Source: Paragordius varius (Eukaryota; Animalia; Nematomorpha). From it: a DNA stretch of 64,000 nt. The DNA is taken from the NCBI GenBank assembly GCA_964247055.1, contig OZ176056.1, forward strand, positions 5,146,001 through 5,210,000, given 5' to 3'. A program made the translations under genes and the position numbers. Numbering within the stretch: the stretch's first letter is position 1; each line of letters starts with the position of its first letter. Positions 1 to 59,500 of this stretch are shown in pieces. The notes beneath the pieces are model-generated. The model was not told the origin of the DNA. It saw only the letters and a list, made by a program, of their open reading frames with translations, and did not search any database.

Positions 1-520
1 TTCCAATGATTATATATGTAGTCATAAGTTTGTACCGGTAAATAACATGTAATTTGGAAATGAAATCGATATAATTTATCAAAATATTGTGTATCGTCTT
101 CTACACCTTTTCCCATCTCCAGGTATTATATGGAAGCCGTGCAAAAAAAACTGATTGTCTTTTGCCGCAAACTATGAGACAAGCCATATTACAACATCTT
201 CAAAATAATTAATATGATTCTCTGCAAGGATGTGTCCTATTAATGCAAAATTGTATTTGTCAAATGATCAGTAGATGCTAACGAAAAAATTTGCCATCGA
301 AGCGATTCTAATGTATTTCAGCTGGTTTTGCTAATGAGACAGAGTATTATTATGAAAAAACACGCCATATCTTCTGGCTAAATTATATGGTTTAAAATAA
401 TCATTTGTTGGTGAAAGCGTTGTACCTCCTCAACCCGATTTAAAAAGTTTTAAATAACAATATCGCTCTAGTCCACAGACACAGAACGAGACGTTTGCCA
501 TTGGTGTTGAGAAACCGCTG
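1..520. mobile_element. Possible end fragment of a hAT-family DNA transposon
   Basis: GTTGAGAAACCGCTG at 506-520 is the reverse complement of a CAGCGGTTTCTCAAC hAT-type terminal repeat; the partner end would lie outside the window; no clean ORF. Confidence 0.35.
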
Positions 521-1139
521 GCATGAAAGCCATGATTACCGATTTAATTTGCAAAGTAAAGCGATGTCATATCATATATTAATTCGATAAGTGATCTTTG
601 TCAACGTAAAAGCTTCACAAGTCGCTTTGAAATTTTCGATTTGGAATTCGTAATTTTGTGAAACCTCCAGTAATCTTTTCTATTACTCGTAAACATTTAT
701 TAATTCTTTTTTTTATACATGTAGTGGTTCTGTTTATTAATCATCAATCACTTGCACATAATTGTCTTCGCAACTGTGTGATCTAACAAAGCGCTAACGC
801 TTTTTCACATTGAAATAAGAACTTTTAATATCAAAAATCAATGTTTCACAGGTGTTTATCGATAGATTATGTTCGCCAAATTTTCTGCCACAACCGATAA
901 TTTAAAGCAATGCGTAGAAGAAATGTTTTTTGACATGATTACTATATGCTAAACATAACTAGTTTTTGGTGATAGCTTGTGCGAGTTTAATGTTGTTCCA
1001 TTAATAAAATTAAATACTCAATATTTTTTTTAATATGGAGAAGATTTTTTATATTGTTAAATTTCTCGGTGGTGTCACATACATGCACATATTATATGTA
1101 TATATATATATATATGTCCCTTTTTGGTATACATATATG

Positions 1140-1498
1140 GGAGTATGATAGGTATACAGTGTATGCAGTAAAAGATTGTTAGTGCAAAATAATTTTAATG
1201 AACACAAAACAGGGGGATATTATGGATATGTTTATAAAGAGGGCTGAATGATAATTAATATATAAAAATTGACCCCCTGTTTTGTGTTCATTAAGATTAT
1301 TTTGCACTAACAATCTATTACTGCATACGCTACTGTACAATAAAAACTCATTAATTATTGCCAAATAGCAATGCAACAAAGAAATCATTATTGGCTAATT
1401 GGTAAACATGAAAAAAATAATAAGCCAATAATACTGACCTTTGTGTACATGCTATTTGGCAATAATAACTTTCTATTAATATAAAATTACTCATACTG
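1140..1498. mobile_element. Tc1/mariner-type MITE (family I), interrupted by MITE J
   Basis: Right end TTACTCATACTG|TA at 1487-1500; internal sequence (attattggc...agccaataa...ctatttggca) matches the intact copy at 47712-47882; left end degenerate (agtatga at ~1142). Confidence 0.5.
1157..1335. mobile_element. Tc1-like MITE (family J) with ~60-bp terminal inverted repeats
   Basis: Left arm CAGT-GTATGCAGTAAAAGATTGTTAGTGCAAAATAATTTTAATGAACACAAAACAGGGG mirrors the right arm ending ...CTGCATACGCTACTG; flanked by TA at 1155-1156 and 1336-1337. Confidence 0.75.
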
Positions 1499-1689
1499 TA
1501 AGAACATAAAAATATGTCCCTTCTCGCTAAATATTTTATTGAAGAATTGGTAACATTGCATATGTGTGCATATTTTGATAATTAATTTTTAAGTTTGATA
1601 TATATTTCATAAAAATAATATACAAGGCAAAATTTAAAATTATTTAATCTATATGTGGGCATTACAAGGCACAATATGTATAGTTTTTT

Positions 1690-1950
1690 AAAAAAGGAAG
1701 CTATGATGATCTGATTTAGGCAATTTTCTTAAAGATGCCAGCAAAGTGTAACCGGATGTTTATATTGTGATAGATAACGCCCCAATACACCATGCAAAAT
1801 CTGCAAAATCTATTGAAGACAATTTACTATTTATTCATTATAATATCCAATTAAATCTAAGTGAAAACTTCTTTGCCACAATTAAAAAAGACAGAGATAA
1901 TGTAAAACAATTAAATTATAGAACAATTGTTATTAGATGGCAATGGTGAC
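1690..1950 (+). pseudogene. IS630/Tc1-family (DDE) transposase remnant
   Basis: ORF 1767-1949 and upstream codons give YIVIDNAPIHHAK ... LNLSENFFATIKK, resembling the DNAxxH and NPIENxF motifs of IS630/Tc1 transposases; fragmentary. Confidence 0.5.
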
Positions 1951-3050
1951 ATATAATGATTTCAACAAAAAGTAAGCAAAATAGAAACAATATCTAGATT
2001 TGTATATTTTTATCACAAGACATTTATAGAGTTCAAAGGCAACTACGGTAATTTTATTGATTATATCTTTACAATATGTCCTTTCTCGATATATATTTTA
2101 TAATATATTTGACATTATATACAAATATATATGTGCATGTAGTTATTTATATACCGATGCAACTTTTAAAATAAATAAAAAATGTCATACATATTTAAAA
2201 AATTATACAATAATAATTTTATTATTTACTGTTAATAAAATTGGGGTCGGTATCAAAATGGTCTGTCTATTAACTGACGACTCCTTTTAGTTAACCGGTA
2301 ATGACTTATGACTACACGTGGTATATAGTTCCAGTATTTTAATATATATTTTGTTGTTGTTTTTTTCTGATTTGTCAAACAACTGGTACAGTCGTATGCC
2401 ATAATTTGAATAATGGTGATATGTTTTTAGTCTTTTAATATTGTACGAACAATGCATAGGCTACAATTAATACATTTTAAGGGTTATGACTGCGGCGCAT
2501 TTTAACAAGTTGTTATAACAATATATCATAAAACGAGTAAAACATTACACACATACACCTTACAATCTATATCTTACTAATTACTTGGTTAGTTAGTTTC
2601 TTATTTGTTGTTCATATTAATGTATAAATTACATTTATATAAATTTAGAGTGATCTGTTTGTTTTAACAAAATATTATTATTTTATTATGTAATTAGAAT
2701 GTTGATAACGCCAGTGATTAATTTTAATAGGTTCTGAATCTTAGTAATTTCAAAAATTTATGCATATTTTTTACAACTATATCCAAAATTAAATAGATTT
2801 TTATTTATTTTAAAAAATTAGAATCAAGTATGGTTGTAGGTATAAACGAGTCTAAATAATCACTTAATGAATTTTTATATATATTACGTATAAAGCGCAT
2901 AGTTATATGTATTATTAAAATAAAAAATGGCGTTTTTATAACATAAAAAATGATTGAAACATTAAATAATAGCCCAGAGAGAAAAGGAAAAAAGTGATTG
3001 CATTAAAATCGATAATAAGGTAGTCGTAGAAAAAAAAAATAAAATATTAC

Positions 3051-3475
3051 AATACTGATTTGTCAGGCAGGTATTGAGATGGTATGAAAATGTCATCGAA
3101 AAATCCGAGGGTGACTAAAATTAAAATTTAAGTAACCAATGATTCCATCGGGGGTGTACGATTTGATTTTACCCAAAATTATCTCATCAATAAATGGTGA
3201 AAAAACAACATATCTAAAGTGAACTAAATTATAATAAACATGATACCTCTCGTATATATGTTTGAATCATCTTGTAAAATATGCGAGTCTTCGATTCTCG
3301 ACATATCCCATAAACTGATACCCAAACCTAGGTTTAACATTACCTAAATAAAAGCGCAAAATACTTTATTTGCATATTTTTGATTGATCGCATCTTTTAA
3401 TGTTTCTACAAAGTTATCACCCAGTTTATTAGGAGGGAGCGTGGTTATATCTTTTATGGAGCTCAAAATAAACAT
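3051..3475 (-). CDS. POLR3H: RNA polymerase III subunit RPC8 (C25), coding exons 1-4, 3' partial
   Basis: Exons 3475-3365 (111 nt), 3343-3247 (97), 3223-3137 (87), 3114-3051 (64), joined by GT-AG introns of 21, 23 and 22 nt, give [120 protein letters not shown]. This is recognisably RPC8 (xANKV, VHFRxVVFxPFxDEI, LGFFDDIxIP). A fourth donor (TT|gtaata) follows at 3050; downstream exons were not found in the window. Confidence 0.88.
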
Positions 3476-3689
3476 GCATACATTATACCATATTACACAT
3501 ACCACGTGTATTCATAAGTTTTAAATTAAATTTGTAAGGAAATCAATATTTATTCATAATTTTGTCCACCGTCTAACACACATTTCTCCCATTTTTCAGG
3601 TAATATATGAAGGCCATTCTAAAAAAATTGGCTCTCTTCTGCGGATAGCCACTCATCCAGCCATTATGTCAAAATTTTTCCAGTGCTGA

Positions 3690-4262
3690 CACTTGGATAC
3701 AACACACTCATTTTAGTCCTTCGATTTAAATTGGGGTAGTTGGATACCCCAGACCTGCTTAAAATCAAATAGTTTAAAAGTATGGAAGAAATCGAAACCA
3801 TGGCAAATTTTTGCACTTATATAACATTAATAAACTGAATTATATAAAAAATTTTATTTAAAAATACTTGATATTACTTAGTTTAAGCTAAAACCTAAAG
3901 GTAAAAATTTCGTCAACGTGACATGTGTGAAATGTAAAATTAAAAATAATAGAAAATAAACCGCTTTTTCTATTTCTATCCATGCTAAATGTAATTTATA
4001 TTAAAAATTAGCCTAAGTGTTACCCTTAAAATTAAATGAAGACGATATTTTGCAAAAATTTTGTAAAATAAAAATGGCGTCGAAGTAGTTTAAGATGGAA
4101 CTTTTTTTTCAAAACAAAATTTTATCAAGATATTTTGGCATATATATATAATTTTTATCAGGATAGAAGCAAATTTTAAATAGGAACCGTTTCCCTCAGT
4201 AGTTTTTTAGAAATAATTTAAATTTAGTTTGAGGTATTTAAATACCCCAATTAGCGAAGTAT
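3690..4262. repeat. Dispersed repeat/MITE family G, copy 1
   Basis: Reverse-complement match to ~35975-36550 (e.g. ttcgatttaaattggggtagttggatacccca); partial third copy at ~49250-49560; the two ends share an inverted AATTGGGGTA..ATACC motif. Confidence 0.7.
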
Positions 4263-6946
4263 TAATGTGCTTAAAAATGATTTGTATTAGTCAGATGGTA
4301 TGCGGATGGGAAACTTCCCATCGAAGCGATTTTTGATTTGACGTTCATTCAATTTTTGTGCTACCAAGTTTAATGATTATTTTTAAATGCTTAAATACAA
4401 TTCATTCTTTTTCTGATACATATGATCATTGAATTAGATCATCTTCCTATAACTCTACCAATTGATCGATACAGTTATACTGATTGCGTCTACTGTCTAT
4501 CATATGTAACCAATTTTTATTAATAAAACATGGTTAGTGTTAATTGATAGGGTGTACTCATTGTTTCTGTCAGCAATCGATGCCTTTCAACAATGTGATG
4601 GCACACCGCAAATTCGACAAGATTACCGAATGATAAAAAAAACACTAGTTTATGGAAATCATCTTGTGCTGTTTCCTGTTTAATGGATGAACAAAATCGG
4701 ATTGTATATTATTATACACTATACTTTTGACTGATGTCTTTTTTTAGAAAACCGGTAAATGATAGATTTACTATTTAATTTTATTCGAGATTTACAAAAA
4801 TGTATGCGCTAAATCAGTACTTCGAAATTTTGCGATTATATATAAATCGCAGCTGAGTACCTTCTGTGCCAAAAAATAAAATAAACTTGATTGCCAACAT
4901 TTTTTAACAAAGTTATTATAATAACCTTCCTATTTTTACTTGTTTTTAACATATGATAATTTTAAATATGCCGCCATCCTTGTAAAAGCTCAGGGGAAAA
5001 CACTAAAAATAACTTAAGGACCTTTTATACTTTCATATTTAGCACATCTGGACTATTTTCTTTTACGATTTATCTTTGAGTACCCTTTTAAATAGAAAAA
5101 CTTTTAAAAATCGGTAAAATTTTAAAAATATGGATGATCACTGAGTTGCACAGGCTTTTGACGTTAGTTATTTGAAAACTAGCTGATTTTAGGAGCAAAA
5201 AATTGGGACTTTCGCCCATATCTGAAAACATTTTTAAAAATTTTGCTTTTATTAATAGTTGAGATATATTTTTGGCTATTAAAATGAAACATTTAGCCTT
5301 CACCAAATAAATTTTATTTAAAAAATGATTACATTTATATCTGATATGGGGTATTTACCACAAAATGGTAAATAACTTTATTAAATCTGTCGTAAAGGCC
5401 AAAACTAAAAGCACCATGACTATACTGATACATTTCTTTATCTAAATCTATATATATTTAAATATGGAAAATTCTGGCTTTGTGATCGCGGTAGACCCAT
5501 AAAAATCTAAATGTCGAAAAAATATAATTATTAATGAATGCTCCGACAATAGCTTCGCCCTTTTTGGATTAGGTCTACATTTCGGGCCCATCCGTGTAAA
5601 AAAACGTTTTTTTTGAAAATACAAGTCCACAAAAATCATGTCTTTGAGATATTTTTCCGGAAAAAGTGGTAGACCATTCGATTTAAAATATGATTTTATT
5701 TTACTTATTTTTGATTGCGCCGAACATAGTCGGGCTTTTTTAATTTGGGCCCTCATTTTACCCGCTTCCTCCGTAAAGTGCCACTTTTTTAAAAAAATTA
5801 AGCCCACAAAAATAATTTTATGAATCTATTTTTTGCCCAAAGTATGAGACTGTAAAACTTCATTAATGATTCCAGTTTCCCTTTTAAGTCAAAAGGGTAA
5901 ACAGGTACTCGCCAAAAACTGCCCCTTCATATCAAAATAGCGTGCCTTTGGAGCTAAATTTTAAAAAACCTATCAGGGCATATAAGTTGAATAGGTGAAG
6001 AATATCCGAAACAAGACGAAAATAGGATCGTGCGGTTTTTTAGAATTAGCCGTTAATTAGGCCCATAATACCCTGAAAAATGCGCCGCCATTGAATGACT
6101 TTTCAGTTTTGGTGCAATTTGGTCAAAAATTAATGACAGATGGAAATAATAGGTATTCTCCGTAAAAAGGCAAAAATTTTAATCAAGCGATTTTTTTATC
6201 AACCTCTGGGTATGGAGCTACCCGCCTAAATATGCGTCCATATCGAATGGTTGTTAAGGAGTTAATTTTCAGAAAACTTATCAGGCCACATAAGTATAAT
6301 AAGAGCCTGAAATATTAGCCGTAAAAGGGCGAAAACTTAAGCCGAGCCGTTAATTTTAAAAATAGCCGTTAATTAGGCCTTTTAAGCTCTAAAAAATGGG
6401 ATGTCATTGAACTATTATTTAATTTTCATTTCCAAAAGCTATTAGGCACATATTGAAAGATGTTTTCAGGTATTCCCCTAGAAAGGCAAAAATTTCTATC
6501 GATCGTCTTTTTTATATTAACCTCTGAGTAGCGGTCGCCTACAACTGCGTCCCATATCGATACCGCGTGACTTTGGAGCTAAATTTTAGAAAACCTATCA
6601 CATACAAGTTCAATAAGGGCTTTAAATACCCGTAAAAAGGCAATAATTTAAGTAGAGCGGTTTTAAATTACCCCTTAATTAAGCCCTTACACTGAAGCGC
6701 CACCATAGAATTACTTTTTGGGTAGAAGGAATTTTTCGTAAATCCCGAGAGATATGGAATTAATCATGATTGCAGGCATTACCTGAATTAAGGCAAAAAC
6801 TTTAATCGAGCGTTTTTTGTTTCGCCCATGTTTAGGGGCGACCACCATAAAACTGCATCACCATATCAGCATGTCTTTGGAGCCAAAATTCAGAAAACCT
6901 ATGAGTCCAATAGAAACATATCGAATCCATAATTATTACAGATATT

Positions 6947-9080
6947 AAAATAATAATTTGTATTCTTGTAAAATTTATTGAATTCAAACTATATCCAAAA
7001 TTTTTGATACATGAGAGTATCTTTTTCAATGGATTAACTAAAATAAAAGAAAATAATAATAAGATTAATTTAAACAAAATTTGAAAAATATAATTATAAA
7101 GATAACAAAAAAAAATTCAAAGTGATGTGCATGTGTTATTGTTTTTTCCTTGGCATGGTAAATATTTTGAAGTAATCTGTTTCTTTTAGGAAGTCTTTTG
7201 TGACTTTGTTAAGATCTTTCCTCTCTTCTCTCTGTTGATGAGGTGTATACTGTTTGAATGGATAAAACAGGCCTCCAAAATCAACCTATCGGATAATTTG
7301 TCGGCTTGTGCTACAATGGATGCTGGGCCGAAGGTGTGACCTGTATTGTTGCAATGGTCGTAGATGGCCGAACCTTTTCTGTTGTGTTCTTTTTCTCTAA
7401 TATATATAGGACGTTTAGATTGTCCAATATAGTGCGCTGGACAATCATTACTTCTTTTGTGGCAGACTGGACATTCGTTTTTTGGTTCTCGGCGTGGTCT
7501 TTACAAACTTAATAGATTCTTTGGTGGTTTGTAATAAACACGTACATCCTTTTTTGTAATAATATTGTTAACTTTTTTGGATGTATTGTTATAAGTCAGG
7601 CATATACATTTTTCGGGCGGATTTTGCTTTTCTCTTGGGTTTAATATATTGTTTATTGAATCTCAATGCTTTTTATAACCTTGATCAAGTAATATAAATG
7701 ATTATCATGTTAAAGATATTGATATGTTTTGTTCGTTAGATGTAATCTCTTTATATACAAATATACGAATTGAATTAGCGTTTCAGGCGTTAAAAAAACA
7801 ATAAATGATAACATAGATTATTTTAACAGCCATATCCATCGAAGTGCGCTTTAATCACTAATAAATATTGCGCTGTATAATACTTATTTTATGTTTAATG
7901 ATAGTTTCTATAAGCGAATTCGCGGGACTCCAATGGGTTCACCATTTAGTTCAATCATTGGTGAAATTTGCATGAGACTAATTGAGCAACAGGCTTTTGA
8001 AAAATTTTGTTCAAACCTCTATACCCGTTATGTGGATGATAATTTAATCATCGACACCATTGACAATATAAAAGTTTTTCAAAACATTATCAACAAAATA
8101 TCCGAGTTAAAATTAACAATAGCGGAAGAAAAAAACAACAGTATCAACTTTTTAGACCTCAATCTTACCCGTAGAATCAATAGTATATCCATACAAGTCC
8201 ATTATAAAGACCTTTTCTCTTACCAATTCTTACCCATTACGTCAAACCATCCAGTAGCTACTTATAAAGCCATAAGTAACGCGTTTCTAAAAAGAACGCT
8301 TAGATTACATGACATAAAGATACGAACATCTCAAACATCAGAAATCGTAACCATATTACTTGATCAAGGTTATAAAAAGCATTGGATAACAGATTCAATA
8401 AACAATATATTAAACCCAAGAGAAAAGCATAATCCGCCCGAAAAATGTATTTGCCTGACTTATAACATTACATCCAAAAAAGTTAACATTATTATTACAA
8501 AAAAGGATGTACGTGTTTATTACAAACCACCAAAAAATTTATTAAGTTTGTTATTACCACGCCGAGAACCAAAAAACGAATGTACAGTCTACCACAAAAG
8601 ATGTAATGATTGTCCAGCGCACTATATTGGACAATTTAAACGTCCTATAGATATTAGAGAAAAAGGACACAACAGAAAAGGTTCGGCCATCTACGATAAT
8701 TGCAACAATACAGGTCACACCTTCGGCCCAGCATCCATTGTAGCACAAGCCGACAAATTATCCGATAGGTTGATTTTGGAGGCTTGTTTTATCCATTCAA
8801 GCAGTGTACACCTCATCAACAGAAGAGAAGAGAGGAAAGATTATAACAAAGTCACAAAAGACTTTCTAAAAGAAACAGATTACTTCAAAATATTTACCAC
8901 GCCAAGGAAAAAACAATAACACATGCACATTTTGCATTTTTTTGTTATCATAATTTATAATTATATTTTTCAAATTTTGTTTTAATTAATCTTATTATTA
9001 TTTTCTTTTATTTTAGTTAATCCATTGAAAAAGATAGTCTCATGTATCAAAAATTTGGATATAGTTTGAATTCAATAAAT
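6947..9080 (+). mobile_element. Penelope-like retroelement (5'-truncated, with inverted 3' duplication)
   Basis: Forward copy ~7696-9080; 6973-7695 is an inverted duplicate of 8353-9080; target-site duplication TATTACAGATATT at 6934-6946 and 9080-9092. Confidence 0.9.
7696..8919 (+). pseudogene. Penelope reverse transcriptase + GIY-YIG endonuclease (truncated, frameshifted upstream of 7891)
   Basis: Motifs SLDVISLYTNI (upstream frame), GTPMGSPFSS and RYVDD (RT); VYHKRCNDCPAHYIGQ and RLILEACFI (GIY-YIG-type EN); 342-aa ORF 7891-8919. Confidence 0.9.
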
Positions 9081-18365: not shown

Positions 18366-19529
18366 ATGAATAGGATAAAATTTACCATAAATTTTGGGGA
18401 AAAAAATATTATTTCCTTTTCATATAATGAAGGTTATTTTTTTTACCAGAATTTTACAAAGACACCCCTGCAGTATTAACAGTTATTGATTGCGATATAG
18501 AAATAGAAATACAAAAGTTTACCCGATTCGATTCGGACATTAGTAAAATATTTATTTATTGAATATGTTTAAAAGATAATTAACTCATGCACAAATCAAA
18601 AATATATATACATATCAAACTCTTTCTTTTTAGGATTTATTCCAGAAAATCCCAGGTTAAGATCACTATGGGTTAGTTGCATCACAGCTGATCAGGGTAA
18701 AAAATCGATAGATTTTGTTTCCTTCTTTAACCCCTTTAGGGGCTTACCCGTAAACGAAACAGTTACAGACAAGGTTTATGTTCACACGAAACAAACCCCA
18801 GTAATTATTGTTGACGAAGAATCAACCAAAACAGGTTTATTGCAAATATGGTATTTTCTTATATGATATTTTACTTTTACGCGGTTAATAAAGTAAAAAA
18901 TAAACTGTCTTTACATAATCATTTTTTATGAATTCTATTGTTAAAATATACGGCTAACTACGGGGCAAGTGACGACTAGAAAAATTAACCGGCTCACTAT
19001 CCTATTTCTCCACGGTTTCCAAATTAATGTACAAATATTACTAATTTTAAGGTTTCATACAATTCTTTTCCTAAAGTCATAGTTGTCATTTCACCCGTAA
19101 CACATAATCCTATTATCTATAATTTATTTGACACTTTTATTTGTTTTTTCAGGGATATTGGGAAGTGGGACCAAACCCCCAATTAGAACAACAACTCAAC
19201 CAACTACTATAGCTACAACAAAAATTCAAACCACTCCAAAAATAGTAATTCCAAATTATGGTCACGTTATTATAAATTCTATGCATGAAAATATACGAGA
19301 ACACATGTACTATCGTGGATACATTAAGAATAATCAAGGCAGTCCTATTGGTCCAGTTCACGTAGATGTAATTAAACGTTTTTAATTTTATTAAAATTTT
19401 TTATAATTTTTTATCCATTTGATATATTATATACAAATATAATTTTTGTAATTTTAGATAACTCTTGAAAAGCCTGGGCACGTTTCATTCATAATCAAAA
19501 AGCGACAAAGACCAATATACATTACTTAA
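18366..19529 (+). CDS. Uncharacterised protein with Thr/Pro-rich segment (5' end uncertain)
   Basis: Phase-compatible GT-AG exons 18450-18542, 18634-18834, 19153-19367 and 19458-19529 (TAA) give ...FYKDTPAVLTVIDCDIEIEIQKFTRFDSDIRFIPENPRLRSLWVSC...TKPPIRTTTQPTTIATTKIQTTPK...KPGHVSFIIKKRQRPIYIT*. Candidate upstream segment 18366-18432 (MNRIKFTINFGEKNIISFSYNE). No family recognised. Confidence 0.6.
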
Positions 19530-34700: not shown

Positions 34701-37700
34701 GCTTTATCACTCACCTACCCAGGGCTGTTTGAGAGTAACGATGGAAAAATTGCGCAGTGTCTTAAATGATATGGTACGCAACTAGTGTAAGAGGCGTCCT
34801 ATCTAAATAACATCATGCTTTCATGTATTTCATAATAAACCGATTTTAAATTGTAATATTTATTTATTATTATTGACGTATCTTAAAATAAATTAATTTT
34901 AACACAGGAGTTATATTTAATTTAATCTAAATTTTTAAACAATTTTAACATCTTAAATTAAGTAAAACTACAAAAACGGTTAGATTTTTCAATCTACCCT
35001 AAGATTGCTTTTTTAATGTTTATTTTTATGATTATCAAAAATTCAGTGTCTTGTATTTCAGCTAAATTGATATTGGCATATTATATATATATATATATAT
35101 ATGAATATATTTAACAGGATTAATTGTGTACACTGTCTATATTTGATTACAATTTTCGGGCATATATATATTATAGTTTCCATAAGAGTACCTCCTTCTT
35201 TTAAATATGCCAACAAAAAAATAGTATGGGATATTTACGCTAAATAGTTAAATCGAACTCTTTTTAACATAATTCAAAACAAATAGGATTGTTTCATATA
35301 TTTCCAACAATAGTAAACACATTAAATTAATTTGAAACGTCTTCTAGGTTTTTGATGTTAATTATGTTAATAATAAGAAAAAAAATCTATTATTTTTAGG
35401 TCATATATATCCTAGGTCGGATGTTAAGGCCATTAACTTGAATTTTAGAGCAAATGATCAATCCCTAAAAAGTCATCACCTTGAATATAAGTCCTTAATC
35501 ATTTCGAAAAACGTGCAAGTCAGTCCGTATTTTAACTTTAAATCGTCCAAATAATTTCTTTATAAAAGCGTATTCAAGTTTCTTGGATTTGCTGATTTTT
35601 TCATTTTCATATGTATTTTTTAAATAAATAGTAAAAGCTAGTGTCTTCACAGCAATTATTGAGAAAAAGTGTGTGGGTTTTTTTGGCTTCTATTTATTAA
35701 AAGCCAGAATGAAATTTTATTAACGCTTGGTAAAAATGCTAGTTCATTTAAAATAAAAACAACCGAGATTTCGCAATAAAAATCTTAAATATACGCTAAA
35801 TTTTAATTCTGAGGCAATAGCTAAAAATAAAAATGTTGCGGATATCTGATAAAACGAACCATATATTGGTGCAAGGGAAAAGCCAAAAGTTTAAATCAAA
35901 TGCATCACATAATTCTTTTTGGATGTAATTATCTGAATGGCTAATTCTATAACATCCTAAATTGTTTTGATTAACACTTCGATTCAAATTGGGTTATCTA
36001 AATACCCCATACAAAATTTAAAATAATATTTTTAAAATAATCCTGAAGGAAACTGTCCCATTTTAAATTTATGCTTCTGCTTCTATCCTAATAAAAATTT
36101 TATAAAAAAAACAAATTATCTAAATAAAATTTCGTTTTGAAAAATAAGTTCCATGTCACACTACTTGGACGCCATTTTTTTTTCCAAAATTTTTATACGC
36201 CTTCATTTAATTTTAAAGGTATAATTAAAGCTAATTTTTTAATTAAATCGCATTTAACAACTATAGAAATAGAAAAAGTGGTTTATTTTTTATTATTTTT
36301 GCATTTAGCTAATGCACATATGTTACGTTGACTAAATTTTTGCCTTTAGGTTTTACATTAAAATAAGTAATCTCAAGTATTTTGAATAAATATTTCGGTT
36401 TATTAATGTTATATAAATGCAAACTTTTGCCAAGGTTTCGATTCCTTCCATATTTTATAAAGTATTTAATTTCAAACAGGCTTGGGGTATCCAACTACCC
36501 CAATTTAAATCGAAGTACTTAAATCGATATGTTTTATCCAAGTGTTAAATAAACAGTTCTAGAACATCATTGAATCCAGTTAACTTAACCGAAACTTTAA
36601 TGCGAAAGACTAAGCTCGGTTTTTAGGTAATAAATTAGTTGTAATTTTAGAAAAACTATGGTTTATGTAAACAAAAAATTAAATAAAATGTTGCTTACAA
36701 GAATTCTTCTTGACTTGTGGACGGATATCTAAATTAAATAAAAAATATGATAAATATTATGTTTACAAATTTTGGATTTCAACATAACAGTTATTATTTA
36801 TATTATTAAAATTATAAACCATTACAACTAATAGAGTTAATAAAATTCATAGCTAAAGGGTTATACATTTGACCTTTAAAAATATATACAATAATATTAA
36901 TGTATTTTATAATATTTTTAAATCTTAAGCGATGACATGTATGTCAGAAATTAATAATTAGTCCGTTTTAAAATTGTTGTTAATACAATTACGTTTGAAA
37001 ATATATAGCAAGTTAAAATTATAAAACAATATATCCTGTATATAAAATTTTTATCTTTATCATTTGTTCGAGCATAAAAAATTCTCTAAAAATTATTTTA
37101 TAAGTTATCATTTAAATGTAATAATTTTTAATAATCTAGTGTACGAAAATCGGATAACTGTATCGATTCACAAGATTCTAGTGTTTTTGTTCTAGGAATT
37201 CTTATGGGCCGTATTGAAATATTATTTATTTGTATACAGTATTACGCACTCTATCTTATTTTTTGGAATATTGCATGCTTTATATATAAATTCATATTTT
37301 TAAAAAACGTGCCATGCCAAATTCAGGAATAAAAAGGTAATTTTAAAATATGGAAATTTACCAGCTTTCATAATCTGGGAAAAATTGTGTCATTTAAAAA
37401 ATACTTTTTTTACTTATAATCCTAATATTTGGCAGACGAAATTAAATAAGGTTTTTTAGTAGGCATAAATAAGCTTATTGATTTATAAATTAACAAGGAT
37501 AAATATATACAATGTGTGCAAAAAAACTATAATAATTTTTTTTTCACAGATAGCTTATGAGCGAATTGATCCGTAAAAATTATTATCTGTTTACGACCTA
37601 GTTTTTGAAATATTGTGAGAAAATCGAAATCGGGCAAAAGTGAAAAAGGATGATAAAGGATAATAATTCAAAAAATAATGATAAAAGTTGAGATATTATG

Positions 37701-43700: not shown

Positions 43701-46700
43701 GGTTGCACCCCTTGAATAAAAATTTGCTTCAAATTTTATATTACGCGATTATAATAAAGTCATTTAAAAATATGCTCAAAAAAGTATTAACAATATATAT
43801 CATTTCTTCATATATTATTCGTTTTTAGATACAAAATTTAAATTTAGTCTTTTCATTTACTAAAAATGAAATCATAATTCGAAAATTTATTAGTATCACA
43901 TCCTGAATAATGCAGTAAAATACTGAATTATAAACTATTTAAATTTTTGGAAATTATAAAGCATGGTTGATTATCCTATTAAATATTAATTAATATTTTT
44001 GGCGCTCTAATTTTCACAAATAAGGTATTTAACCAAAACAATTAATTAGATATATTGGATGCATACCCTACATTTGGGGTTTATATTTAAAACAACAGTA
44101 GATAATTAATTTAAAATTGATCAAAGGCCATACATATAAATCAATAATTTACAAGGGAAAGAATAGATAAAATAGCGAGCGCACAGTTGAATAAACAACA
44201 TTCTAAAGATATTTTTAGGGTTAATGTATAAAGAAATTTCTCCTTATATAATAAATTAAAACTATTGATTGCAATGAGTTGGTCTAAAGGTTTAAATATT
44301 TTCAAAAAATTAGATAATGATAAAGGTAAGTATAGATTTAATAAAAGGTTTATTATAAAACGTGTTCAAAATTGGTGTTTAAATTTTAATTATGTTATTG
44401 ATTACCCTAAAATTAGGAGTCCAGAACCACTTCTATTGATACAGTTTTTTTATACGAAATTTTTGGTTGTTTAAAGCTTTTATATCTTACAGTTTATCAA
44501 AACAATTTAGATATGTTTCTGAAGGAGGTATAAAACAATTAAATATCATGTAATATACTTAAAAAACGGGCTTCCAGATAACATGGTTCCTATTAAAGAT
44601 TTCTTAGGCTGCATTTGAATCTTAGCTAAGGATTTTGGACTATCTACTTCTATAATACTTGCATTATGATTTCGATTTGAAACTGAATATAAATTTTTTT
44701 TCCCAAAATTTTCTTTAAATGATGTAAATGAGGAAACACCATTAATTTTCGAATTATTTAATCCTGAACTTAAGCTACTGTTAATGGATTCTAGAGAGGG
44801 ATCAATTTTAACTTTTTGATTTGTGCTAGAATTTTTATCACGCCTTACTATGCTTTGAATCCGACTAAATTTGGGTGAAATGGTAGAACTTTTATTTGAG
44901 ATTTTGTCAAGCGATAACGATTTTCTATACAATTGCAAATTATTTATTTGGTTGAGAGAGCCATTTCTCAAAACTTCCTCAGGAATTCTTGGAATTGCAC
45001 TTTTATCTTCATTAGGTACCGTTTCTCTATTACCGTTTACATTGAAAGCGCTCAAAGTAGAGAGTATGCTTTGTGCTATACTGTTGAGAAGTCTTTTCTT
45101 GGGTAATATATTATTTTTTTCACCATATTCACTTAGTTCGGATTCTACAATGCTTGCTTTAAGTAAATCGTTTCTTAAATTATGATGATATTGTATATAA
45201 TCTTTCGATTTTTTGCCATGTAGAGTTTTCTTCGATGATGTTTTAAACTCATTACTGTGATAATAATCGGGAATGGCATTGCTTTCGGAATCGCCTTCAA
45301 GGGGAGAACTTTCTTCTCCCTTTTTATTTAATAATTTTAAGGGTATATGAGATTCACACCAGGGTATACAACCACAACATGTGGAAAAATATTTTGTAAA
45401 CTTATCACTCATGTTCATTAGGACGTGGGGATTAAAATGTGTGAATAAAATAAATCAAATATGGAGTAAAAATAATGAATTTGGATACATGGACAAAAAT
45501 AATAATAATAATAATTATATAGAGGTTTTTTTTACCTTAAAAACCAATAAGTACATAGCAAAACAATTGGTTTAATTATTACATATACAACCAAAAATAA
45601 TTATCTTTGTTTTTAACAATATTTAGGTACAATTAATCGGAAATTCATTTAACCTATCAATTGGCTTATAGTAACATATATATAAGATAAACTCTAAAGT
45701 TTGCAAAACGTTTCAATATTTCCCACTTCCTGAAGAATTATATAAAATACATTTTTATCATCTCGTGTATGCGAAAAGTATGTCCATAATGATTATTAAT
45801 ATTTTTATTTTTGTGAAAATGTCGTTTTTAGTTTGTGTACATAAACCACATTCGCCTTTAGTTTTATATCTGGCTGCTAGAAAGTGCTATAAATATTGAA
45901 CAATATCTTATGGCTTAAACACAGTACTATGATTAATGCATAATTTTATATTTGTGTCTCAATGGTGACAAAGAAATATCAGCAGCATTGCAGGCACTCT
46001 AAAATTTTTGCATAATTTTTAAACTCTATCCCTAAATCATTCATTAATCTATTCCTCAAAAAGTTTCATTGGTTTTTTACTATATATGAAGACCTAAAAC
46101 ACAGAATTATGGATAAATGTTCTATATGAATAAATTATTTCTAAATTGCTAATAAGTATTAGATTACAAAGTGTAAAACTTGAATGATTAGATATGACGT
46201 ATAAGGCTAATAATTTATGTTAATTAGCCACACAAAAAAACAGTTAAATATATCAAGGTCAAATCTATTGACTGCTCTTCTTTCAATGCAATAACTATTT
46301 GCACTATTTTATCAAAATCTTATAAATAATTGGGAGATCAAATTTCTTGTATGAAATATTTTTTTATCTGTAAGATACCATCATTCTTGGGCAACAATAT
46401 GGTTAACTAAATATCGTCGGATTGTATAGAAATATGATTACATGTCTTATTCAAAATATACCATTTACACTTCAAATTCACCCTGGAACAATTCAAAATT
46501 TAAATGCACTCTCGAACAATTTAAACTCACCCTAAAAATAAATGTGTTTTCCGGCAAATATCTCATCATTAATATGAATTATTTTTTATGGCATAGTTTA
46601 TTTTTTTCAGCATTATGTTAATATTAAACAATCATTTTTCAAAAATAAAAAATATAGGCAGTTTTTTATATTCAAAATCATATAGTTCATTCTAAAAAAA

Positions 46701-49700
46701 TTTTGAATTGTTCGGGAATGACTTTGGAATGTTGTAGGGTTAATTTACGCTGTAAATGGTATAAATTGTTTGAGCGTTAAGATATATATATAAACATACA
46801 TTAAATATTCATCAATATAATCTAATAGTTTTGTTGGAAGTTTTATTTTTAATTAACCTTTCTCTAAAACGGTATCTTCTGAAGGCAAAGTTAAATTTTA
46901 CCAGTTAATAATTGAAGACGGTGTTTGTAAAATTTAAACTTCGTATGTCTAAAAGTTTAATTCAATTTAATGTTAATGAAATACAACATAAACTAATGGG
47001 AATAAATTACATCATACATGACAAGAACAAACACTAAAATACATAACACAGCACAAAATAGATAATGTAAAAATATATTAATGAAATATATTCTTATAGA
47101 TAAATTCAAGTATTCTTGGTTTAGGGGCTTTTTAATAATTTAAACATAATAATTTTTATGGTAATTATTTCATATCAAAAAAACGCAAAATTAGCGCACA
47201 TTATGCACTTTTTTTCATGAAAGCTAAATAAATTTTAATTTTAATGGCTTAATGCTGAAATTACTCATATGTTTTTAGGCTAGATTATGATAACCAAAAA
47301 ATATTTGAAAATGCATTAATTACTGCAGAAATTTGCTGAAGCGTCATTTAAAGCATAGTGGTAATATAATATATACTCTTGTTTTACATAATTCGGATTC
47401 AGAAATCTCTCACCTAAAAAATCACGTTTGTTCGTCTTCAAATTTAAAGAGATACTTTGTGAAACACATTTTTCGCAAGTTGGAAATTTGAAATGTAATT
47501 AAACTTAACCAAATATGTAATTATAAAAAATAATTTTTTTGATTTTATTATAATATAGCAAATATACTAAAAATTGTAATTGCGCTACTGGCATTTTCGC
47601 GTTTATGTTAAGTAAAACGGCGTCGCATGATAGAGCTGTCCAAAAATTTTAAATATCCGGAGCTCTATTTAAAAATTAAAAGTCACCAAATATTGCTTTC
47701 TTTTTAATATACAGTATGAGTAAGTATATATTGCTAGAAAATTATTAATTATCAAATAGTAAATACAAAGGGCAGGATTATTGGCATAATAGCAAAAAGT
47801 GAAAAAAAATAACTATAAGCCAATAAAACTGCCCTCTGTTATTTACTATTTGGCAGTATAACTTTCTTACTTACTCATACTGTATATTAATTATAAACTA
47901 AATGATTTCTATTATTATTGCTTTCTTTGGTTTTATGGCCCCAAAATTTAACAAACAGTATTTAAATATCTTATATTATTTACTAACTAGTTGCACTGAT
48001 AAATAGTGGTTGTTCCCTAAAATAATTTCATTTTTTTTCGTTTAACGGATACTAAAATTTAATGAACATTTTTAACTCTTGTTTTTATTGAAATTAAATT
48101 TATTATCATGTCCTATGAATTGTATCATTTATTGTATTTATATTCTGCCTAGCCAAAAATACATTATGTTTATAATGGGGATAAAAGAGTTTGTTACAAA
48201 CTTCAATTTTTTTAAAAGGGTAATATACTTTGAATCTCTCTTAAGCCTAATTTGATTTCCAAAATTTGTAACAAACTGAAATTTCATAAATCATTCATGT
48301 TATAATATTTTTTCACATTTTTTCGAATTTTTATGAAAAATAATTAATCTATATTTCACTGAATATATTTCTTACCTTTTAGTGTCAACTGCTTTGCCTT
48401 GTAATTCCGTGTAATCATTTTGATTCAAGAACGGTTTTAGAGTGGAAGATATTTTCTTGAAACTTGTGGTTAAGGCCGATTTTAATTTAGGGGTCGATGG
48501 AATACCAAAATTATCAGCACTGTTGCCATTAATTTCTCCTATGATTTTTTGACCAGTTTTTGAATTTCCTTCATTATCATTTTTCATAATTTTATTTGGG
48601 TTATTGTTGTTTTCACTAGATAAACTTTTGGTATCAATCCGCGATCTGCCATATTTTCTTCTGATACCTTCGATGTCATCATGGATTTCTTAAATGTCAA
48701 TTATTAAGAAAATATAAAGTCTTATGTATAAATTAATGTATCGGGATTCTTATGGTGCTTTTGGTTTAGGGCCTTACGAGTTATGGAAATTTTTTCTACT
48801 TTTGTAGTTGATGCAAAATTTGAGCATATTATATTAATAAATCTTGTTGGAAGCATAATGCTTCATTCCAAAAAATATCGTTAATATATTATAATATTTT
48901 AAAAAAGCAAAAAATATTTATATAATTGTTTTTAGATGGGGGCTCTAAAAGTCTCAGATATTTGATGGGCTTTATAAATAAACGCAAAAAAGCCGTTTTT
49001 CAATTTAATTTTTAATTATGTGATAAATTATGACATTAAATATTAAAAAAATCGAAACGATTCATCAAAACCTTAAATTTTGCTAAACGTATTTTGTGTT
49101 ATTTCGGAGTATTGTGAAAACGGTATAAAAACAGTTTATTTTTTAGTACAATTTTTCAATATATAATAAATTCGATGATGATGTTTCTATCACCTCAAAA
49201 TATTGAATAAAGATTGTTCGCCAAAATATGCAAAATCATCATAAAAACTTGATTTTACATATTTTTTATATAAATTCGTAAAAATCTAGCCAGCATGACA
49301 TGTGTGCAGCTAAAATAAAAAATGCAAATAAATTACTTTTTTTATTGATTTTAATGTTAGATGCGATTTTAATAAAAAAATAACTTAGCGTTAAAATAAA
49401 AACACACTATTTTGCAAAAGTCATAAAGATTGGTTTCAAAGCAGTTTGATATAAAGTTTTTTTTTCAAAACTAAATTTCATCTAGATATTTTGGCTATTT
49501 ATAGATTTAAATTGGAACCGTCTTCTCCATTATTATTGGGTCATTGGTTTCCCCAATTTTAATAAAAATGTCAATTAAAGGTGATAGAAATGTTTAGAGT
49601 TGATGAAGTATAGAGCGAAATGTATTTGTAATACTTTAAAGTGTCGTTTTTACCAAGCTCACACGACCGGTTCATCAATTTTTGCTAAAATTTTTTTTAT

Positions 49701-53500: not shown

Positions 53501-56500
53501 ATTGCGTTCACTGGTTTTCCGGAAACAGATCACAAAGTTACATGAGAAATCAGTTTTTAGCGGGTAGCTCCTTACCCAGCAGCTATCATCAAAGAAACGC
53601 CTGACTAAAATTTTTGCCTTTCAACAGGGAATACGTGTAATCCATATAAAATTTTTACTGTCTCATACCTAGGGCGAAAAATAGATTTAAAAAATTATTT
53701 TTGTGGACTTTGTTTTTTGAAAAAAATGGCATTCTAAATCAAAAAAGTGACTCGACTATGTTCGGCGCAATCGAAAATAAGTAAACAGAAATCATATTTG
53801 AAATTGAATGGTCCAACACGTTCTCCGGAAAATTGTCTCAAAGACACGATTTTTGTGGACTTCTGTTTTCAAAAAAAACCGTTTTTCACACGGGGTGGGC
53901 CCGAAATGGGGGCCTAATTCAAAAAAAGGACGAAGCTATTGTCGGGGCATTCATTAATGATTATATTTTCGAAGTTTGGATTTGAATGGGTCTACCGGTT
54001 TTCCGGTACCAGATCACAAAGCCAGCATTTTCCATTATAAATATATAGATATATAATGATATTTTTTAAAATGAAACACATAGCTTTCACTAAGAATATT
54101 TAGTATGATCTGCCAAATTTCCGTTTTTTTCATATGGAAATTATTATTACAAGAGTGTAATTTTATTGTATCACTCCTAAGGCCCAAAAAGCAGCATGAG
54201 CATTTTAATATTTACCTATCAATATATATATATATATATATATTGATCAGGATATTTTTTGTGTGTAGTGTGTATATAATATTTCAAAAGTATAATTAAC
54301 ATTTTTTAATCATATGGTTTATACGGATAAATTTTTATACACATTAATTTTTTCATGATTAAACATCACATCACAAACTGATAATACATAGTTTCTTTCA
54401 TTTTAAAATACCTTTTTTATGATATTTAATTTAATGTTTTAAGTTCAAAAGTATTTACCCTTCTCTTTTGGATTATCTGCAAAAGAGGACACAGTTGAAC
54501 CTAGGGATTCTTTAGAGGTTGAATATTCACCACGCTTTTCAAAGGCCCTTCCCATAGCAATCAACACTCCACCCAAAATTTTTAAAGTTGGTTTAACTAT
54601 TGTGTCTCCCCTGTTGTTGGACGAGATGGTATTGAGATCAAGTTTTTTATCCATGGTAACGACGTTATTATTCGCTAAAGTTTTTAATATACTTTCTTTG
54701 TTTTTACCTGATTGCTGATGTATCGGACTTATATGTTCGGCTATAGAGGTAAGGGATGAAAAGGGTTTATTTAATGCCCTCAAATTATTGTTGTTGTTTT
54801 TGGCCCCGTTAGCATTTAAATTGCTGCGATTCCGACCTAGATCATTTTCAATTGTAAAGGCATTTAATTTTGGACACACATTTTGACTATCAGTACCATA
54901 TGTTTCATGACTATAGTTATCATTAACTGTGTTTGCCCGTTGAAATTTACTTCGTCGTACATTAACTGCTACATATTAATAGAGAAAATCTGTATGATCA
55001 AAAAATTATACAGGAATTATAAAGGTTTTACTTTTAGCCAATTTAGATTCATATGGTTTCTCCAATGGATTACGAAACTCTTGTAATCTATTTTCCGCCA
55101 AAACCATTTTATCTATGTCTTCATTTAAGGACGAATGATATATGGGTTTATCTAATTTAATATGATATTAAAGATAAAATATGTATTAATCATGTAAACA
55201 CTTGGCTAATATATCTATAGCTCTGTTTATAAATTATGTTTAGCTACATTGACCTTTGTTGAAATATTGAGAGAAATCATTTAAATTATAGTATAAAATT
55301 TAACAAAATAATTAAAAACCACCTAGGCTTGTTATCGAAAGAAAAATGAAGACTTTGGGAAGAAAATGTTTTGCAGAACATAATGCATATGGTTTAAATT
55401 GAAAATTGTACCATTTTAAATGGTATAATGAATAGAATAGGTATTATAAATACAAAATCGTAAACAGTTAATATATCCGAATCTGTTACCATATATATGT
55501 CAACATTATAAAATTCGATCAAAATATTAAGTCCTGCGGATTTATAATGTATATTTTTTGGTATTTGTCGTTAAACTGTTTTTCAGTTTAAAGGGGTGAG
55601 AATCAGAGGCATGGACGCATTCTTAACCTTTGAAACTCCATACAAACAAAATAATGATATATGACATTCATATAGAATATTGTCAAATAATTTTAATAAC
55701 TTGAAATAAACGCAAGAAAATTGATTGGCTATACGACTCAAAAATCTCTTATTATTAGATTGGAATAAAAGAACATCGCCGCTTAGAATATAAATATAAA
55801 AAATAACTTTTTTCTCTTGTACGGCTAGTTAGAGGCATGGAATTTACATAAATCGGATTAATTGAACCGTAAGAGCTATTGGAAGATATACTGTGCTTGT
55901 ATAAATCACCATTTTTTTGACAGCCATAACCATGTTTAATCGTTTCATTTTGGTTTTTGTTTGAGAAAGTGGAATCTATGCTAGTCCTCTCATATTTATA
56001 CCAATCATCATCAATATTGTAGTGTGGAAAAATGTTACGAATAGCTTGAATCAATCTTCCCCATATCCTATTACTGCATGAAGTGTTTGACTTGGAATCA
56101 TGATGAAATGCGCTCATAGAATTCGATCTTGGCCGTTCCTCTATGTTTTTGGGCAAACCAACATTTTTCAATTTATACGATTTCTCTTGTTGTTGTGTTT
56201 TATCATTATTATTGCTGATGGTATGTAAATGGTATTCGCCCAGTTTCCAATCTGTTTTAAGCAAGTTAGGATTGTGAATATGTTTATGTTCATGGTGAGA
56301 TTGACCTTTCCGATGAAAAAATCCAGGAGTCAAAATCATATGGGAAGTAGTGCCTGTAAACAATATATTTTATGTGTAGTAACATCCTGAAAAGTTATTT
56401 TGATTAAAAAAAATGTCATCTCAAGGGGTTACGATTCTCACATAACTGTATTCCCGGAAATAATCATATTTTCTAATGACATATGTTTACTGATAACATT

Positions 56501-59500
56501 CCACCAAATAATAAATTATTTTAATGCCTACTTTTATTAGATTTCTGACGAAACTTTTCTACATCTTACATTTATAATTCATGGATAAAATTTTTGCTAA
56601 TAAAAATATCAACCGTAATGATTTTAAATATTATTAAAACACTTGTTTAAATTCTCTCTTTAAATTTAGAGGTCATTTGTGTTTAAAAAATCCATAAAAC
56701 TGATTTTCAGCAACCTATGAGATTAGTATTATAAACTTATTTTATTTAATGTGTATGTAAAGCAAATCGTTAAATAATACATATATGATTATGGTATATA
56801 TATAAGTAGGTCCAAAATGCGAAAATGGGTTTAGATTATATTTTTATGCATAATGATGGCAAAAACATTCAAATAAACCACCTTTTTTAATTAATTAGAT
56901 TTAGTATAATTAGCATAACCGAAATAAACATTATTTTTAAAATGATGAATATTCACCATTTGATGAATTCATATTTGCACGAATGTTTTAAAATACTCAA
57001 TTAAATATAGGCATCTATACCAAAAAAATAGTATATATTTTTATACCCAAGTGATCTAATGATGTAAATTCGAGTTATATTAAAAAGGGTATACTTAAAA
57101 GATTCATTTAAATAATAAATTTATTTATATGCCTAACTTATTAAGTTTTAAAACTTATTTTTTTATATATATTTGACTCTTTTAGATCAAATTTTCCCAA
57201 ATCGAAATTTCAATATTATTTAAACTACATTATGAACCAACATATATCACACATAATTTAATTATATCAAATCGATTATAATTAAAAATATAAATAAAAG
57301 GATTTTTTGGCCAATAATCGAAAAATTACCTATTTTAAGAATGATACGTATGCAATCTATGTAGAATATGATGAGTTCAAAAAACGTTATCTAGGTGTTT
57401 TATTTTTAATTAGGAAATCAATAATTACTAGCTTTGTATTTGAATTGTCATATCAATTGTGCATGACAATATGTAATTTTACATGTAAAGCATAGAAATC
57501 AAGTGTACAAAAAATATTTGTTTAAAAAGTCTTAATTTCTAAAAAAAATATTTTAAAAACACAGAATATCCTAGTTCTGGCTTATGAAAATAATCATCTA
57601 GATCCGGACCCTTGATTAAATTAATTCCAAAGGGATTTCTTAATTATGCTCATTAAAAATTTACTACGCTACATACCGGGTAATTAATCCAAACTCCGTC
57701 GGTAAAAATAAGCATATTCAGAAGTAAAACTGTTTCTTCTCAATGATAAAATAACCTATACATATTTGTTAAATTATAGTCATAATTGCTTTATAGAGAA
57801 AACATTCCGATTCCGATTTTAAATGACATTAAGGTACTAATACCATGTATACCAACTTTACTACGAGATAACGTCCACTACGAGGACGATTTTGATACGA
57901 ACCCCATTTTGTTCATCTGACATACTACAAATTTACACATTTTTCTTTTTTTTCATTCAGTAACCATGTTATTGGTCTTGAAAGAATTTGCGATGCTTTT
58001 AATATTTCATCAGAAAAAGGCGGTTAGCGTCATGCTGGTAAAAACGCATGAAAACATGCTCCAATGTAAAACATGTTTTGAAAAGTTTTGAAATGTCCTT
58101 AATATGAAATAGAGTAGGTACTCCGGTAGAACATAGCGGCCAAGATTATATCAAACATTGTATGATAAAACAACTCACGCCAACTGGCAAGAACACATCA
58201 CAAAAAACAACAGAAGATTTTTAAGCACATCAAAGACCAATCAACTCGATAAATGGGTCTTACACAATTTAAATAGATTAAGCCAAAATCGGAAATACGT
58301 ACTGCTTCAACGTAACGAAAGAAACATATCTTCGAATTAGACAGTAGATAGGAAGTGGATTTATTTTGTAAATTCAAAAAATTATGGCTTAGGGATTAAA
58401 CGCTTCGGAAAAAGACCATGCTTTGTGTCTGATTCCAGAGCGGTATTGATATTATCAAGCTTTGAAACCCGAAAATGTTAATACACGCTATCGCCATTAA
58501 GCGATTAAATAAACCGTGAATTTATGCACAAATGATGGGAATAAGCCAGTCATGGCAAAGTTAATTTACTACATACCAATGCTCCGTCTCACACAGCCAA
58601 ATCAGTAAAAACCATGATGGGAAATTCTTACACAAATACTCCGTATTCTCCTGGCCTGCATCAATGGACATCCTCGCAGAGCAGCAGTTCAATTATTTTA
58701 AAGAGGTTGAAAAATGTCTTGACAAAAAGTTTGCCGCAAATGAAAATCGGCTTTTCTAACATGGCATTCATAATCTATTTGACGCAAAAACAGTTTTTGA
58801 TCTTTAAGCATCTAAATCATAGCGTAAGGGAAATTCTTTTTATATAATAAATTGCTAGATTTTTATCTAATGTCAATAAGATACCATATACCAATAATCC
58901 ATTTTTTATAAATAATACGAACAATCTAATAAATAAAAACACACAAGTTCGGTTAGACTCACATTAAATAATTTGATTTATTTTGATTGTTATTAATTGT
59001 TTAGGTAGGACGGAAGTCTCTTGGGTGTATATGCTGGAGTTCGAAGCCCGAAAGAGCAATTTTAGCATAATCGCTGTCTGCCCAAGATGGATGAATTAAG
59101 CTTTCACTGGTCCTGATATAACTTAAGCCAGGGCTTCTTAAACTTTTGTGAGTTGCGACCCCATTTATGATCGCAAATTTCATGGCGACCCCAATAAATA
59201 TAAAAGAAAAATAAATTAATATTTTTTGATTATATATTTATAAACAATATACATATGCATATGAAAATATATAAATTTAGAATTCGATTTGAAACATAAA
59301 AAATCATAAATTAAAATTTGCACAAATATTCCGATTATTATAATATATTGTATAAATTTATTATGAATCAGAGATGTTATAGAAATATAAAAAATGTAGA
59401 TTTATTTTTGTCAATTTCTTGAAATCGAAATAACCCTGATAATATTATCAACAAAATTTCTAAGTGTTATTTGAAAGAAACTATATAAACATTTTGATTT

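Follow-up and report, generated by a model that had tools for sequence, protein, structure and literature searches.

What sets the lower size limit of spliceosomal introns is an open question, and it is posed by a minus-strand locus near the start of the window, the 64,000-nt stretch of Paragordius varius DNA analysed here. In this locus the coding sequence of an apparent RPC8 (POLR3H/Rpc25) gene, which specifies an essential polymerase subunit, is interrupted by three segments of only 21 to 23 nt. The issue is whether these segments are genuine introns of a working animal gene.

The gene model comprises four exons on the minus strand, exon 1 at 3365-3475 (111 nt, with the ATG at 3475, residues 1-37), exon 2 at 3247-3343 (97 nt), exon 3 at 3137-3223 (87 nt) and exon 4 at 3051-3114 (64 nt, ending in phase 2), which display a GC content of 31-40%. 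They are separated by intron 1 at 3344-3364 (21 nt, phase 0, GTA...TTTAG), intron 2 at 3224-3246 (23 nt, phase 1, GTA...TTTAG), whose donor end reads GTATCATG, and intron 3 at 3115-3136 (22 nt, phase 1, GTT...TTTTAG), exactly as originally predicted in coordinates, lengths and sequences (3364-3344, 3246-3224 and 3136-3115, minus strand). The AT content of the three segments is 71-86%. All three begin with GT and end with AG, a joint outcome with a chance probability of ~2e-9 given local dinucleotide frequencies and fixed gaps, and no alternative GT or AG adjacent to the junctions preserves both the frame and the exon lengths of the orthologs. Once the segments are removed, the frame that opens with the ATG at 3475 runs without a stop to 3051, a length of 119 codons and 2 nt; the continuous RPC8 frame proposed earlier is thus restored, but it covers only the N-terminal 119 of ~200-230 residues. 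When a single intron is kept, translation ends after 43, 76 or 112 amino acids for introns 1, 2 and 3, respectively. The original prediction correctly described an in-frame TAG in intron 1 and a frameshift in intron 3, which is followed by a stop, but it also assigned a frameshift to intron 2, where retention likewise ends at an in-frame TAG; in both introns 1 and 2 this TAG constitutes the last three bases of the intron itself. Adenosines are confined in intron 1 to positions +3, -6 and -2, and those preceding the acceptor are located at -6 and -7 in intron 2 and at -7 and -8 in intron 3. The A at -6/-7 is therefore a candidate branch site in all three introns, although three introns are too few for a branch consensus and an A at this position in AT-rich DNA is weak evidence on its own. 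A count of GT...AG segments by length over the whole window, which holds too few genes for such a count, revealed no peak at 21-26 nt. Two other intron classes were rejected for these segments: U12-type introns (RTATCCTT donor, CCTTAAC branch site), whose donor is found in none of the three, and IRE1-type (HAC1/XBP1) introns, whose CNG|CNG hairpin loops occur at no junction.

The RPC8 model was searched exon by exon, and the joined frame was used only for the frame, retention and decay-simulation checks. Scores against per-exon RPC8 profiles were 38.6, 40.8, 53.2 and 27.8 bits for exons 1 to 4, compared with a background of at most 8 bits. Exon 1 matches the Pfam family SHS2_Rpb7-N (E=0.0019) and its best PDB matches are residues 1-37 of yeast RPC8/Rpc25, while exon 3 alone, searched with phmmer against 1.84 billion representatives, matched RPC8 proteins, with the top identity (82%) to a protein of the hairworm Gordionus sp. 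m RMFG-2023 (P0009), whose cluster partner P0078 is named RPC8-like. Identity to Gordionus RPC8 in the remaining exons is 21/37 (exon 1), 21/32 (exon 2) and 11/20 (exon 4), and the total for all four is 75 of 117 (64%), compared with at most 58/117 for any other fetched homolog. The exons align gap-free, residue for residue, with residues 1-119 of Gordionus RPC8, and the two share 11 rare residues, while no other homolog shares more than three. Together these comparisons identify the RPC8 of Gordionus as the closest protein found for the gene in the window, which encodes the N-terminal SHS2 domain and the start of the Rpc25 OB domain. The RPC8 identity originally proposed is confirmed by this alignment to orthologs, with which the profile, Pfam, PDB and Gordionus matches agree; as also noted there, the gene is absent from the listing of open reading frames (70 aa).

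Orthologous RPC8 proteins were mapped exactly onto the genomic loci of Gordionus (hairworm), Capitella (annelid), Stegodyphus (spider), Aplochiton (fish) and Actinostola (sea anemone). In all five genes introns follow coding nucleotides 111, 208, 295 and 359, in phases 0, 1, 1 and 2, and the three segments of the window together with a fourth donor sit exactly on these four sites. The correspondence of the 111/97/87/64 exon pattern with vertebrate POLR3H, put forward in the original prediction, thus holds for the fish and extends to the annelid, the spider, the sea anemone and Gordionus. Intron sizes differ widely. Gordionus RPC8 (GCA_954871325.2, locus L001) comprises exons of 111, 97, 87, 64, 129, 160 and 45 nt separated by introns of 37, 46, 44, 141, 6,960 and 221 nt, while introns 1 to 4 measure 51, 85, 347 and 557 nt in Capitella, 131, 738, 162 and 253 nt in Actinostola, 121, 328, 143 and 239 nt in Aplochiton, and 82, 6,611, 5,677 and 5,118 nt in Stegodyphus; introns 1-3 of the annelid, spider, fish and sea anemone genes therefore span 51-6,611 nt. 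Since the positions are common to five orthologs, the introns of the window are best regarded as ancestral, spliceosomal and shrunk to less than 25 nt. The sites and phases indicate that these positions are older than the cnidarian-bilaterian split and that the small size is derived, which gives good support to the proposed shrinkage at ancestral positions, and the last step, from ~40 to ~22 nt, is most simply placed within the hairworms. The annotation of Gordionus RPC8 contains two acceptors for intron 1 (L001 10112-10160), giving introns of 37 or 49 nt and isoforms of 231 and 227 amino acids, respectively.

Intron 4 displays a distinct history. Its donor is GTATCCT, of the U12 type, in the annelid, spider, fish and sea anemone, several of which also carry a branch-like CCTTAA near the 3' end, while it starts with GTAAT in both hairworms. 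This suggests a U12-to-U2 conversion of RPC8 intron 4 in Nematomorpha. The introns compared are located at L001 10487-10627, L002 1143-1699, L003 1691-1943, L004 1252-1490 and L006 13030-18147.

Between the window and Gordionus, the RPC8 exons present a pN of 0.22 and a pS of 0.69 (dN 0.26, dS about 1.9), with 30, 19 and 61 mismatches at codon positions 1, 2 and 3, a pattern indicating that purifying selection has acted on them relative to Gordionus. Of 38 near-invariant RPC8 columns the window preserves 28 and Gordionus 29, and the mean identity to non-hairworm RPC8 is 43% and 44%, respectively; by both measures there is no sign of relaxed selection. Searches for the spliced product that used Gordionus RPC8, whole or cut to residues 1-119, found no second hairworm in the protein collection, and a search with the exon-1 open reading frame found no candidate protein from the same species, blanks that say little.

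The 3' half of the gene raises a separate difficulty. The fourth donor, GTAATATT, lies at 3050, exactly at the ancestral site, and opens putative intron 4 (1-3050, minus strand), which starts GTAATATTTT, compared with GTAATTT for the 141-nt intron 4 of Gordionus. Motif searches, tblastn and per-exon HMMs detected no signal of exons 5-7 on either strand of the window. A complete gene would thus require an intron 4 of more than 3,050 nt; otherwise the locus is a partial copy comprising the 5' end. Inside putative intron 4 lies a degraded mariner-like relic (17-2324, minus strand) with ~26-nt inverted ends and nested insertions. On the other side of the exons, a second degraded mariner relic extends over 3499-4790 on the minus strand, its far end being approximate, with a MITE (3689-4266) nested within it; the segment 3618-3553 matches the C-terminus of the Mos1 transposase (E=7e-4), and the terminal repeat stops 23 nt short of the RPC8 ATG, on its upstream side. 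The two relics share the same orientation and are 72% identical over 118 nt. With the mariner end so close to the ATG, the RPC8 promoter or start site would be in or right beside transposon DNA. Elsewhere in the window a third mariner-like piece is observed near 58545-58844, the 580-nt MITE occurs a second time (35970-36545, 79% identical to 3689-4266), and two small palindromic MITE-like elements (1158-1331 and 1354-1466) lie inside putative intron 4. The Gordionus RPC8 locus (28 kb) displays no repeat family in common with the window. Protein affinity places the source of the window in a nematomorph or a near relative rather than a dicyemid or myxozoan, and the absence of common repeats together with the dS of about 1.9 indicates that this source is probably a different animal from Gordionus.

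This arrangement lends some substance to the view that the locus is a non-functional 5' partial copy, produced by segmental duplication or by transport between two mariner elements, with the working gene located elsewhere. The 3,050 nt downstream contain none of exons 5-7, the fragment is enclosed by same-orientation relics with near-identical terminal repeats on both sides, and the 23 nt separating one of these from the ATG leave scant room for a native promoter and 5' UTR. The relics, however, are 28% apart and full of stops, whereas no exon and none of the seven splice dinucleotides is damaged. When neutral decay was simulated, the share of runs in which the piece escaped damage was 5% at a divergence of 5% and 0.3% at 10%, and at 14% it escaped in none of 3,000. 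This makes a capture long ago unlikely and leaves room only for a recent copy. Long introns are normal for RPC8, intron 5 of Gordionus extending over 6,960 nt. We thus consider a partial copy unlikely, though it is the most serious of the alternatives. Even such a copy would owe its tiny introns to a working parent gene, because decay does not shorten three introns yet spare their ends.

The remaining alternatives concern the removal of the segments and the source of the DNA. The introns could be genuine by descent yet so short that they are spliced inefficiently, with most transcripts retaining them and a minority yielding RPC8, as in microsporidia, where the median splicing efficiency of tiny introns is ~25% according to work cited in PMC13644364; human introns similarly fail when the distance from donor to branch falls below ~50 nt (PMC11291888). 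Nevertheless, RPC8, being essential, requires all three introns to be removed at once, and the micro-introns of myxobolids are supported by long reads (PMC13644364), making inefficient splicing very improbable. Hardly credible, finally, is removal by a non-spliceosomal route of the IRE1/HAC1-XBP1 type, or derivation of the DNA from a contaminating ciliate or another protist with tiny introns. These two readings share with the data a similar length range only (IRE1/HAC1-XBP1-type introns measure 20-26 nt), while the segments bear GT-AG ends at ancestral spliceosomal positions and the protein is closest to that of a hairworm by a wide margin (75/117 versus at most 58/117). In addition, TAA and TAG are stops in the intact open reading frames of the window, unlike in most ciliates.

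On these grounds we regard the locus as very probably the 5' half of a working nematomorph RPC8 gene whose introns 1-3 are U2-type, occupy ancestral positions and have been cut to 21-23 nt. In the explanation proposed here, the RPC8 introns would already have been short in hairworm ancestors, as the 37-46 nt of Gordionus suggest, and further small deletions in the lineage of the window would have reduced them to their present size. The major spliceosome would then recognise each micro-intron as one unit, by intron definition. The signals used would be GT(A/T) at the donor, a branch region rich in U whose branch A lies 6-7 nt from the 3' end, and TTTAG at the acceptor, with hardly any distinct pyrimidine tract. 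The predicted lariat loop would measure ~15-18 nt, and 16 nt in intron 1, where branching at -6 would be all but forced since this is the only usable A, if branching uses an A. Unspliced RPC8 RNA would expose early stops and be directed to nonsense-mediated decay. A single spliceosome would handle both classes of intron, the tiny introns 1-3 and the transposon-filled intron 4 of more than 3 kb, and would have become adapted to micro-introns. It is likely, although less so than the identity of the locus itself, that after diverging from Gordionus this hairworm lineage acquired a spliceosome able to excise both introns of 21-23 nt, in which the branch A lies only 6-7 nt from the 3' end, and multi-kb transposon-filled introns of the same gene.

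Ultra-short introns of this kind are known from few organisms. Among the 51 animal genomes surveyed in a 2026 study, introns below 30 nt were confined to myxobolid myxozoans and Dicyema japonicum; the study associated them with parasitism and with reduced genomes, and predicted that more cases would emerge (PMC13644364). The original prediction had named ciliates, nucleomorphs and dicyemids as lineages with introns of ~20-26 nt, a list to which the myxobolids must be added (PMC13644364). Median intron lengths in myxobolids are 27 nt in Henneguya and 22 nt in Thelohanellus and Myxobolus rasmusseni, and the micro-introns of both myxobolids and Dicyema contain weakly conserved A residues near the 3' AG (PMC13644364). 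The introns of the window resemble those of the myxobolids in size (21-23 nt), in their GT(A)...AG form, in their ancestral positions and clustering, in the A shortly before the 3' AG and in their occurrence in a parasitic animal. Myxobolids, in contrast, belong to Cnidaria rather than Nematomorpha (Ecdysozoa), and myxozoan genomes are compact and transposon-poor, whereas the window is 26% self-repeated and contains introns of 81 nt, 1.6 kb and probably more than 3 kb. Moreover, myxobolid splice-site motifs are reported to be reduced, while the TTTAG acceptor is kept in all three micro-introns of the window. Dicyema japonicum presents the same size class and a reduced GTa donor, and is likewise a parasitic bilaterian (PMC13644364), but it is a spiralian mesozoan with a simplified body, and the 37-46-nt introns at the same sites in the hairworm Gordionus argue for an origin independent of Dicyema. 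In Stentor the branch A is located at position 10 of 15 or 11 of 16, which corresponds to -6, so that the U-rich body and the candidate branch A six bases from the 3' end are shared with heterotrichs (PMC9505925). These are ciliates whose introns measure 15-16 nt throughout, whereas the hairworm genome mixes tiny and long introns, probably within one gene. The closest comparison remains Gordionus RPC8, which shares the 111/97/87/64 exons, the phases, the GTA/GTA/GTT/GTAAT donors, an AT-rich genome and a combination of short and multi-kb introns, and differs in the sizes of introns 1-3 (37, 46 and 44 nt) and intron 4 (141 nt). Intron 1 of Gordionus also contains a branch-like ACTAAT with its A at -12, compared with the candidate A at -6 in the window.

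No report of tiny introns in hairworms was found in the literature searched; hairworms are unmentioned in the main text of the 51-genome survey (PMC13644364), and the word "intron" is absent from both the Gordionus genome paper and the Nematomorpha comparative paper. As far as that literature shows, the kind of intron is already known, but neither its presence in the hairworm lineage nor its coexistence with long introns in a bulky genome has been published. The present case, if true, would represent a third independent animal origin of introns below 30 nt, with no precedent in Ecdysozoa or in a bulky, repeat-rich genome. The myxobolid and Dicyema cases are both explained by genome compaction (PMC13644364), but sequenced hairworm genomes are transposon-rich and measure 200-300 Mb (Gordionus genome paper, Nematomorpha comparative paper). 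Compaction alone would be insufficient here, because the tiny introns lie beside long ones in a repeat-rich genome. Gordionus, with introns of 37-46 nt at the same sites, would then provide a ready control for finding spliceosome changes, making the step from ~40 to ~22 nt directly comparable with respect to branch position, U2 snRNA, SF3B/U2AF and branching factors. Gene finders with a minimum intron length above ~25 nt miss or break such genes, and genes missed in this way may inflate apparent gene loss in hairworm genomes.

Other features of the window include an unannotated multi-exon gene candidate at 18366-19385 (plus strand) with exons at about 18450-18542, 18634-18834 and 19153-19385 and a Thr-rich stretch, for which no Pfam or Atlas match was found. 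The frame opened by the ATG at 18366 joins this candidate if a 17-nt GT...AG segment (18433-18449) is removed, a segment that may represent an even shorter intron or simply contain the acceptor of a long intron. A reverse-transcriptase open reading frame at 7891-8919 (plus strand) belongs to a Penelope-like or LINE element in the region 7189-8919; at about 7189-7695 its 3' part recurs as an incomplete copy in inverted orientation. A synaptotagmin-like C2 gene at 25260-23057 (minus strand) contains introns of 81 nt (25113-25033) and 1,649 nt (24875-23227), read from the frame continuity of the C2 domain, revealing that long and tiny introns share this genome. The gene probably extends to about 61334, and the minus-strand open reading frames at 44546-45418, 48372-48689, 54445-54975, 55755-56369 and 60990-61334 may constitute its upstream exons.
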